The position numbers and the translations under genes are program-made. A stretch of DNA of 63,307 nt, counting the filler, from Olpidium bornovanus S191 (taxonomy: Eukaryota; Fungi; Olpidiomycota), in NCBI GenBank assembly GCA_017911155.1. It is 28 parts of 28 records of this genome, joined end to end, with 100 filler letters (N's around TTAATTAATTAA, not from the genome) between each part and the next. Parts side by side here need not be neighbours in the genome. Positions count along the whole stretch, not along the records: positions 32,350 to 33,620 come from JAEFCI010002654.1; 27 more parts are not named here. One strand, given 5' to 3'. Below, piece after piece: positions 32,250-33,720 of this stretch. Under the pieces are notes generated by a model. That model had not been told where the DNA came from. It saw only the letters and a program-made list of their open reading frames with translations, and ran no database searches. Positions within the stretch are counted from its first letter, which is position 1, and each line of letters opens with the position of its first letter.

Positions 32250-32549
32250 NNNNNNNNNNNNNNNNNNNNNNNNNNNNNNNNNNNNNNNNNNNNTTAATTA
32301 ATTAANNNNNNNNNNNNNNNNNNNNNNNNNNNNNNNNNNNNNNNNNNNNGCCACCGCTTTCTCCTCAGCACCGACCGACCGCACGCACGCGCCGATCAAC
32401 CGACCAGTCGACCGCTCCCCGGGTGCAGGAAAGGTGGGAACGGGACGGCTCCAAATACAGATTATTCATGTTTGCGCTGATCTGCTTCTGCCACCAGCTG
32501 ACGCGTTCAAAATTTTCCTCGGACCTTTTTTCAAAAACCAGTAACAACT

Positions 32550-32759
32550 ATGACGAAGGTTTCTCTCGGTTCGCCCCTCGCCTTCCTGCTCGCCACCCTC
32601 CTCACCCTCCTGGTGGTCGCCTTGGCTCCGCAGGCGCAGGCCACGCAGTACTGGCCGGGCCGTTACTACCCGCGCCCCCCCTATTACCCTTGGGGCCGTC
32701 CCCCCTACTACCCCTGGGGCCGTCCTCCCTACTGGCGGCCTTATTACAGGCACATGTGA
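32550..32759 (+). CDS. Small secreted Pro/Tyr/Arg/Trp-rich repeat peptide (69 aa)
   Basis: A-rich context before the ATG, 31-aa signal peptide ending AQA, mature part with PPYYPWGR repeats whose codons differ synonymously. Confidence 0.8.
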   Translation: MTKVSLGSPLAFLLATLLTLLVVALAPQAQATQYWPGRYYPRPPYYPWGRPPYYPWGRPPYWRPYYRHM

Positions 32760-33720
32760 AAGGAGAGGCGAAGGGCGGAAGCTTGAGCGGTGGAGACGAC
32801 CGGGAGGAAATACGTCGGGAGGGAAATGCGTCCATAACGCGGGTGTGGTTTTAGTACAAATAACCCTGGCGTCTGATTTTTTGCAAAGATAAGGGACACT
32901 TGCGCAACGAAGTCTGCCGGTGCGGATGGGCTTGTGAAATGAAATGGAGAGACGGGGCGAAGCCTTTTGGCTGGGATTTGCCGCTTGAAGCTGTCGGAGA
33001 TTTCGCGGGGGTTTTGTCAAGTCGACGGGGGGCTGAAGGGACGGGGGAAGGGGGAGGGGGAAGGACGGGAGGAGAGAAAAAGGGGACGAACGGGACGGAG
33101 AGAAGAACAGTGGGGGTTACACAACATAGCGTCCGCCCACCACCACCACCTGTTGCTTTTCCCTCCCCGGCCTTCCCACGGACGAAAAGGGCCGTGGATC
33201 CGGACCTCCGCCGGAATGCCAGATTAACCGGCCAAAAGCCCGGCTAGTGTCCGCCGGACCGCACCCATCCACCCTCGCCTACTTTCATCGCCGAATCTCT
33301 CATACTCTCTCCCTCGTTTGGATGCTCGGTAGAAGCATTCCCCTGATGGGTGGGGGCAAAAATCGCGGCGCTGTGGAGCTCTGACTGTCGTGCCAGCAGT
33401 TGAAGAACCGTGGCCATGCGTGTTTGGGAAGACGGCGACGCGGCCTTTATATGCGACATACGGCATAATGCGCGACATGACGGAGGATTGTAATAGGACC
33501 CATGACATAACACGCGGCCTGTAAACAGTGTGGTACAAACCAGCGACGTAATAAGCCTCAACATCTACACCCGAGTTACGTTTCTGTCCGCGGAGCTCGG
33601 CAACGTGCAAATGGTGTGCCNNNNNNNNNNNNNNNNNNNNNNNNNNNNNNNNNNNNNNNNNNNNTTAATTAATTAANNNNNNNNNNNNNNNNNNNNNNNN
33701 NNNNNNNNNNNNNNNNNNNN

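Follow-up and report, generated by a model that had tools for sequence, protein, structure and literature searches.

A spliced plus-strand transcript that very probably comes from a real coding gene, one for the 69-residue precursor of a small, predicted secreted peptide, was identified in the analyzed window, a stretch of 63,307 nucleotides of DNA from Olpidium bornovanus S191 in which 28 parts are joined end to end. The open reading frame (ORF) runs from ATG to TGA at positions 32550 to 32759 of the plus strand and lies within a part of 1.27 kb (the piece; positions 32350 to 33620). The best explanation of these data includes a genuine, lineage-restricted protein-coding gene of a eukaryotic microbe, whose peptide is probably secreted; the cleavage site, the secretion and the activity are the parts of this explanation that we infer. 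The first-pass annotation of this DNA had proposed a novel-looking secreted cationic Pro/Tyr/Trp repeat peptide that is selected as a peptide. This core reading is strengthened by the splicing and by the coding signature seen in organism B, and both the ORF and the 69-residue translation quoted at that time match the sequence exactly upon retranslation. The features of the locus are collected in Table 1.

Table 1 Features of the spliced locus, in positions of the window
Feature	Position	Strand	Support
Exon 1, 5' UTR (shortest extent; transcription may begin upstream of 32384 or outside the piece)	32384..32433	+	Organism B contigs; leader of X1 contig
5' UTR intron, 108 nt, GT..AG	32434..32541	+	X1 contig junction; 108-nt skip in X10
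End of 5' UTR in exon 2, last 8 nt (A at -3 relative to ATG)	32542..32549	+	X1 contig; sequence
Coding sequence, 69 codons plus TGA	32550..32759	+	ORF call; frame-keeping indels and mostly synonymous changes in organism B
Predicted signal peptide, 31 aa	32550..32642	+	Hydropathy; crude signal-peptide test; AlphaFold2 helix; 9-nt deletion in organism B
Predicted mature peptide, 38 aa, 5.07 kDa	32643..32756	+	Translation; no regular secondary structure, pLDDT 53 to 60
Tandem repeat, 24 nt (8 codons), 2.4 copies	32676..32733	+	Tandem Repeats Finder; organism B variant lacking one unit
3' UTR, to end of assembled contig	32760..32895	+	End of X1 contig

Transcript structure and expression

A word search restricted to positions 32520 to 32800 revealed that four small runs of organism A labeled "RNA?" contain 71 to 83% of the sampled 31-mers from this interval, and that two runs of organism B contain 33%. 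The run label is an automatic guess, and the argument for RNA comes from the spliced contigs. The contig assembled from run X1 of organism A, 369 nt in length with an assembler word depth of 118, covers positions 32540 to 32895 with two mismatches, while its first 13 letters, CCGGGTGCAGGAA, are not contiguous with the adjacent genome and equal positions 32419 to 32431 of the window. The junction in this contig reads ...GGAA/AGTAACAACTATG and is ambiguous over three positions, an AG dinucleotide being common to both sides; GT..AG borders are obtained only when 32433 is joined to 32542. A pyrimidine tract precedes the AG of the intron so defined. Contigs of organism B start at 32384 or 32386 and join to 32543, with the 108-nt skip given as 32434 to 32543 and located at the same place in run X10, and we infer that this skip is the same intron, accompanied by a substitution at the first base of exon 2.

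The spliced contigs place the transcript on the plus strand. They derive from RNA, a processed copy being much less likely. Lack of transcription had been named in the first-pass annotation as a result that would speak against its proposal, and the spliced contig of organism A, together with the contigs of organism B, now documents transcription. In raw reads of two further, deep RNA runs of organism A (X24 and X18), 0 reads were found among the ~6% of each run that was read, the presence of the organism in these two runs being unproven. In addition, three runs labeled "DNA?" (X2, X3, and X6) contain about the same share of words as the RNA-type runs, and they may also be transcript data.

No ATG occurs in the visible part of exon 1 (32350 to 32433), which makes the one at 32550 the earliest in the mRNA after splicing. 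The intron itself carries an ATG at 32468. In a transcript that kept the intron, this would be the first AUG, and a 128-aa ORF in another frame (32468 to 32854, plus strand) would start there and extend over the whole coding sequence. Splicing is thus a precondition for the 69-aa product, and no retained-intron form was seen among the contigs. At the other end of the transcript, an AAATAA lies at 32858, ~37 nt before the end of the contig at 32895, which suggests that the contig end is the 3' end of the transcript, a contig end in itself being no proof of a poly(A) site. The 3' UTR also contains a 16-nt tandem repeat at 32801 to 32832 (CGGGAGGGAAATACGT, 2.1 copies with 88% matches in Tandem Repeats Finder).

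Several longer but meaningless ORFs are present in the piece, including antisense and other-frame ones over the same GC-rich repeat. For instance, an antisense 184-aa ORF and plus-strand ORFs of 143 aa and 128 aa overlap the coding sequence; they were rejected because the splice fixes the transcript on the plus strand and because no ATG is left in these frames once the intron is removed. No other supported gene was found within the 1.27-kb piece, which also yielded no tRNA. As for Rfam RNA genes, only two miRNA models and rli32 came up, with E values of 0.16 to 0.96 that are far under the gathering scores. Sub-threshold matches to mir-671 and mir-483 (E values of 0.16 to 0.54), most likely due to chance, fall at positions 33025 to 33151, a strongly purine-rich G/A tract with a GC skew of up to +0.55 that is followed by a CCACCACCACCACC run. 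This region includes short repeats of the GGGAAGG type at 33038 to 33064 and is covered by no transcript contig.

Coding signature, composition and predicted secretion

The length of the ORF alone is no evidence for coding: among Markov-1 random sequences matched to the piece in size and composition, 90% contain an ORF that starts with ATG and reaches ≥69 aa. The 24-nt unit of the repeat was located by Tandem Repeats Finder with 91% matches, and a second repeat search returned the same pair. The two full units (32676 to 32699 and 32700 to 32723) both encode PPYYPWGR and differ at two third codon positions (TAT/TAC and CCT/CCC); the third unit is degenerate and encodes PPYWRPYY, so the exact units number only two. 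Synonymous differences between units had earlier been taken to imply selection on the peptide. The differences themselves are confirmed, but as the sole argument they are weak, as such a pattern would arise by chance at a probability of ~0.06, given that ~24% of the single-base changes in the repeat unit are synonymous.

A stronger signature was obtained by comparison with organism B, whose contigs, aligned to positions 32384 to 32778, are 90 to 99% alike and appear as two variants. In one variant, 9 nt are missing at 32594 to 32611, which takes three residues out of the signal-peptide core, and 3 nt are also missing from the c-region, so that PQAQA becomes PQAA. A single complete 24-nt repeat unit is absent from one variant, and this shorter variant ends in ...AGGCGCCGCATGTGA (RRRM and stop), compared with AGGCACATGTGA (RHM and stop) in the window, a difference of 3 nt. 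All four length differences within the ORF (9, 3, 24, and 3 nt) are multiples of 3, while the long variant carries two insertions that are not, one of 1 nt in an A-run at the stop or beyond it and one of 2 nt five bases downstream of the first. Both variants retain the stop codon. Five substitutions were listed in organism B, one of which (32598, L17I) falls in the signal peptide and the other four in the mature region. Three of these four (32720, 32726, and 32729) are synonymous third-position changes and one (32737) leads to R63P, numbers that are small and are to be read against the ~22% of possible single-base changes in the mature region that are synonymous. Judged from this comparison, the indel pattern and the substitutions argue strongly for a frame that is translated and constrained.

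With regard to the two forms in organism B, the repeat array is complete in the long one, whereas the short one is missing a 24-nt unit and has RRRM in place of RHM. The long-form contigs are not joined across positions 32635 to 32640, and either signal-peptide form, the full one or the one that is shorter by 9 nt and 3 nt, may belong to the long form; the short-form contig is ~13 nt shorter across the signal region. Both forms occur at similar depth (5 to 9) and appear to be alleles or recent paralogues.

The predicted signal peptide is composed of an n-region (MTK), an h-region from about L10 to A26, and a c-region (PQAQA), with Ala at positions -3 and -1 and Thr at +1. Kyte-Doolittle means over nine residues reach up to 3.2 in the hydrophobic core. 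Moreover, the 69-aa ORF passes a crude signal-peptide test that asks for a basic n-region, an uncharged hydrophobic core of 12 residues, and a small-x-small site without Pro following; by this test, the basic n-region, the h-region, the small residues at -3 and -1, and the absence of Pro at +1 that mark a cleavable signal peptide were all found, with A-Q-A followed by T at the site. Among random ORFs of at least 60 aa, only 10 of 8184 (0.12%) pass, and none of the other ATG ORFs of at least 40 aa wholly within the piece does. A single-sequence AlphaFold2 model has a helix at residues 9 to 24 and no regular structure in the remainder (pLDDT of 53 to 60), the picture to be expected if a signal peptide leads into an extended chain rich in Pro. 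A perfect in-frame 9-nt duplication (two copies of CACCCTCCT) occupies positions 32594 to 32611 inside the signal-peptide core, and it is exactly here that 9 nt are missing from one organism B variant, a loss that a signal peptide can bear, so that the length of the h-region varies among relatives.

The predicted mature peptide contains 11 Pro (28.9%), 10 Tyr (26%), 6 Arg (16%), 4 Trp (11%), and 3 Gly, with one residue each of Thr, Gln, His, and Met and none of Asp, Glu, Cys, or Lys; Leu, Ile, Phe, Ser, and Val are absent as well. The composition given in the first-pass annotation (11 Pro, 10 Tyr, 6 Arg, 4 Trp, no acidic residue, and no Cys) agrees with this recount. The 14 aromatic residues (37%) and the 6 Arg are spread over 38 positions, with six aromatic doublets in the order YW, YY, YY, YY, YW, and YY and Pro/Gly/Arg spacers between them. 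For the unmodified 38-mer, a mass of 5068.7 Da, a pI of ~10, and a net charge of +6 (plus His) were calculated. The mature region contains no KR, no RR, and no Lys, and the earlier statements that KR sites are missing and that the peptide is unlike KEX2-processed repeat precursors were both correct, the latter as judged by the dibasic motif.

Homologues and comparison with known peptides

Apart from the orthologue or orthologues in organism B and possibly organism C, which contains 5% of the words of the piece, no relative was seen. Searching Pfam-A with hmmscan gave no family even at E values up to 10, and the only match among PDB sequences was a nanobody at an E value of 0.15, which is noise. 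A word-index search of 5.8 billion clusters produced no candidate, and an exhaustive phmmer (HMMER) search of 1.84 billion representatives gave 0 matches at E values of ≤1e-3; distant relatives may escape a query this short and of such low complexity, as its statistical power is small. The exact product is absent from ~15 billion proteins and from 153 billion called genes, and the gene appears to be unannotated in those collections. Scans with back-translated patterns of JGI metagenomes and 185,579 prokaryote genomes revealed no relative, nor did a search of metagenomes with a degenerate DNA pattern encoding YYPWGRPPYY, and the peptide motif strings were not found printed in the literature searched. 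Look-alikes from the ESM Atlas were bacterial exported hypothetical proteins with scores of 0.67 to 0.82, a range that shuffled sequences also reach, and are compositional analogues at most; Pfam profiles of DUF2502, PXPV, and BA14K, which are represented among the look-alike clusters, gave no match. Clear membership in a characterized family had been named as a finding that would overturn the proposed novelty, and the Pfam, PDB, word-index, and phmmer searches all came back empty.

An antimicrobial or polyanion-binding role is our tentative choice of function. Removal of the 5' UTR intron makes 32550 the first AUG, and according to the proposed mechanism, translation would give a 69-aa pre-peptide whose 31-aa signal peptide would direct co-translational entry into the ER and be cut after AQA (A31). 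A 38-aa, 5-kDa, strongly cationic peptide with an intrinsically extended (polyproline-II-like) conformation would be released. Outside the cell, Arg charge and Tyr/Trp stacking would allow binding of polyanionic or carbohydrate surfaces, and cation-pi contacts may lead to self-association. Both behaviors, i.e., binding of polyanions and carbohydrate faces and self-association through cation-pi contacts, are expected from general physical chemistry for aromatic residues and Arg on a Pro scaffold. Within this tentative choice, the peptide would most likely be an antimicrobial of the proline-rich or Trp-Arg-rich kind directed against competing microbes.

Peptides of the indolicidin/tritrpticin type are rich in Trp, Pro, and Arg, and those of the NLP-29/31 type are nematode antifungal peptides with Gly/Tyr/Trp/Arg repeats. 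They share with the 38-mer a small size, positive charge, dominance of aromatic residues and Arg, and secretion, which is predicted here, and the nematode peptides also have short tandem repeats. However, indolicidin is derived from a cathelin pro-protein, and in the nematode peptides the spacers are Gly instead of Pro and processing occurs at basic sites, none of which applies here; homology to either type is absent.

[quoted passage not shown] The predicted 38-mer falls within these sequence limits, with 11 Pro in 38 residues, 6 Arg, no Asp or Glu, and 1 His, and it has one PRP motif at residues 41 to 43 of the precursor (YYPRPPYY). With abaecin, oncocin/pyrrhocoricin, Bac5/Bac7, and Tur1A/Tur1B, it shares a length within 18 to 60 aa, a Pro content of at least 25%, an Arg-based positive charge, the absence of Cys, PRP or P-aromatic motifs, an extended nonhelical conformation, and synthesis with a signal peptide, which is predicted here; WPG and PW motifs are further shared with Tur1B (table in PMC7736402). 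Nevertheless, the 38-mer has no homology to the known PrAMPs, its Tyr (26%) and Trp (11%) contents are far above those tabulated in PMC7736402, it carries only a single PRP, and its precursor has no pro-domain. PrAMPs are known from animals, with one claimed from a plant, and not from a eukaryotic microbe. The class also requires antimicrobial activity and an intracellular target, DnaK and/or the 70S ribosome (PMC7736402), and because both of these essential criteria need assays, the peptide, which may act in the manner of PrAMPs, is not filed here as a member. A composition of this kind is not specific to the antimicrobial class; a Tyr content as high as 26% and a sequence free of Lys, Leu, Ile, and Phe are not typical of the known PrAMPs and would suit cross-linkable wall proteins equally well. 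A precedent from a eukaryotic microbe is given by secreted, cationic, disordered proteins of the oomycete Albugo candida, which are antibacterial with an activity tied to disorder and net charge (10.1101/2022.05.16.492175). These protist-secreted proteins are larger and were found by apoplast proteomics, and sequence similarity to them is not expected; they do indicate that the proposed mechanism exists in eukaryotic microbes.

Competing functions and meaning of the peptide

The candidate functions of the first-pass annotation (adhesive or cyst coat, antimicrobial, wall-protein mimic, and RiPP) are weighed here on sequence evidence. Unlikely by itself, but only slightly less probable than the antimicrobial reading, is that the product serves as a structural or adhesive peptide outside the cell. 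It would be deposited in the wall of the producer, in its cyst or spore coat, or in an adhesive pad, and there be cross-linked through Tyr or bind glucan. Its Tyr (and Trp) residues could be joined by oxidative, dityrosine-type bonds, perhaps once Pro has been hydroxylated, or could stack on chains of beta-glucan or cellulose, and self-association could be driven by Arg-aromatic cation-pi contacts. The abundance of Tyr and of aromatic residues, arranged as doublets in a Pro-rich extended chain, is in line with such a role, as are the high word depth of the contig and the variation in repeat number between the organism B variants, which is common in wall and adhesion proteins. Plant extensins, plant proline-rich wall proteins, and mussel foot proteins likewise combine Pro, Tyr, and basic residues in short tandem repeats of an extended secreted chain with cation-pi and Tyr chemistry. 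However, the 38-mer has no Ser-Pro(3-5), YxY, VYK, or PPVYK motif, has only 2.4 repeats within 38 aa, and lacks Lys, unlike mussel-type adhesives; membership among the extensins or plant proline-rich wall proteins was rejected on these motifs and on the absence of Ser, Val, and Lys. Tyr-rich secreted wall components occur in Phytophthora oospores (the M96 family), for which mating-induced prolyl hydroxylases are also reported (PMC5999078), and, as cross-linked proteins, in the oocyst and sporocyst walls of Eimeria (PMC2726925, PMC4776368). M96, GAM56/GAM82, and the sporocyst wall protein have a signal peptide followed by low-complexity Tyr-rich sequence, as is predicted for the precursor here, and a function in the hardened walls of spores or cysts has been proposed or shown for them (PMC5999078, PMC2726925, PMC4776368). 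In contrast to the 38-mer, with its Pro, Trp, and Arg, they are rich in His, Ser, and Gly and much larger (the median mature length of M96 is 271 aa), the 38 residues being far below the length of known structural wall proteins. Neither the word-index search nor phmmer detected homology to M96, GAM56/82, or any other family.

A host-directed effector or signaling peptide, for example one that binds host wall pectin or proteins or acts as a ligand, is improbable. The gene product is small, predicted to be secreted, lineage restricted, repeat containing, and variable between relatives, all of which are typical of the effectors of filamentous pathogens. Motifs of known plant peptide hormones are absent: no acidic residue stands beside Tyr to permit sulfation (PSY/RGF type), the mature region contains no Cys (RALF type), and its C terminus does not resemble CLE, CEP, or IDA; a mimic of such hormones was rejected on these motifs. 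No host-translocation motif follows the signal peptide. Parts of the piece also occur in soil metagenome runs, which counts neither for nor against this reading.

More improbable still is a reading without any secreted peptide, in which either the transcript is noncoding and its ORF fortuitous, or the hydrophobic N terminus stays uncleaved and anchors a membrane micro-protein. In favor of this reading, chance alone would give an ORF this long in DNA of such composition, none of the protein collections contains the product, and the hydrophobic core is long for a signal peptide (~17 residues, or 23 when counted from V4). Against this stand the indels, which preserve the frame inside the ORF and are non-triplet at or after the stop, the use of the first ATG of the spliced mRNA, and the rarity of a signal-like N terminus in random ORFs. 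Moreover, an h-region of ~14 residues in one organism B variant is too short to span a membrane, and this favors a cleavable signal peptide over a membrane anchor as far as can be predicted from sequence. Finally, a RiPP-like precursor with Tyr/Trp cores modified by neighboring enzymes, an idea that the first-pass annotation had raised and that finds no support here, is very improbable: its repeated aromatic-rich units after a signal peptide superficially resemble fungal dikaritin precursors, but only two units are exact, no Lys and no KR or RR lies between them, which led us to reject a Kex2-processed or dikaritin-type precursor, and no neighboring gene for a modifying enzyme, such as a DUF3328/UstYa-type oxidase, is visible in the 1.27-kb piece.

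Small, secreted, cationic, Pro-rich repeat peptides are a known kind. For the composition of the 38-mer (aromatic doublets with no Lys, Cys, or acidic residues) and for its occurrence in a eukaryotic microbe, we could find no described counterpart. Genomes of this kind commonly encode orphan proteins that are small and secreted. As a speculative extension that we regard as doubtful, the peptide may be the founding member of an unrecognized secreted "aromatic-doublet/proline" class, with YY/YW stickers, polyproline-II spacers, and Arg, that has gone unannotated because of its size and would be either the first protist- or fungus-like proline-rich antimicrobial targeting ribosomes or envelopes or a minimal, cross-linkable, glucan-stacking wall cement. 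Gene callers systematically overlook peptides that are small and secreted. The 69-aa product described here is absent from a collection of 15 billion proteins, yet its gene is transcribed and spliced, and a sister species has conserved it. If the peptide is antimicrobial, proline-rich peptides of the host-defense type would extend from animals to a soil-dwelling eukaryotic microbe, and a new, Cys-free, easily synthesized scaffold would become available; if it serves in a wall or as an adhesive, it would provide a minimal model of Tyr/Trp-Arg cation-pi and dityrosine chemistry in spore and cyst coats. The 38-mer can be synthesized and is therefore a cheap test target under either reading. With respect to habitat, several soil metagenome runs contain 5 to 11% of the sampled words of positions 32350 to 33620, which hints that the organism or its close relatives are soil-borne.
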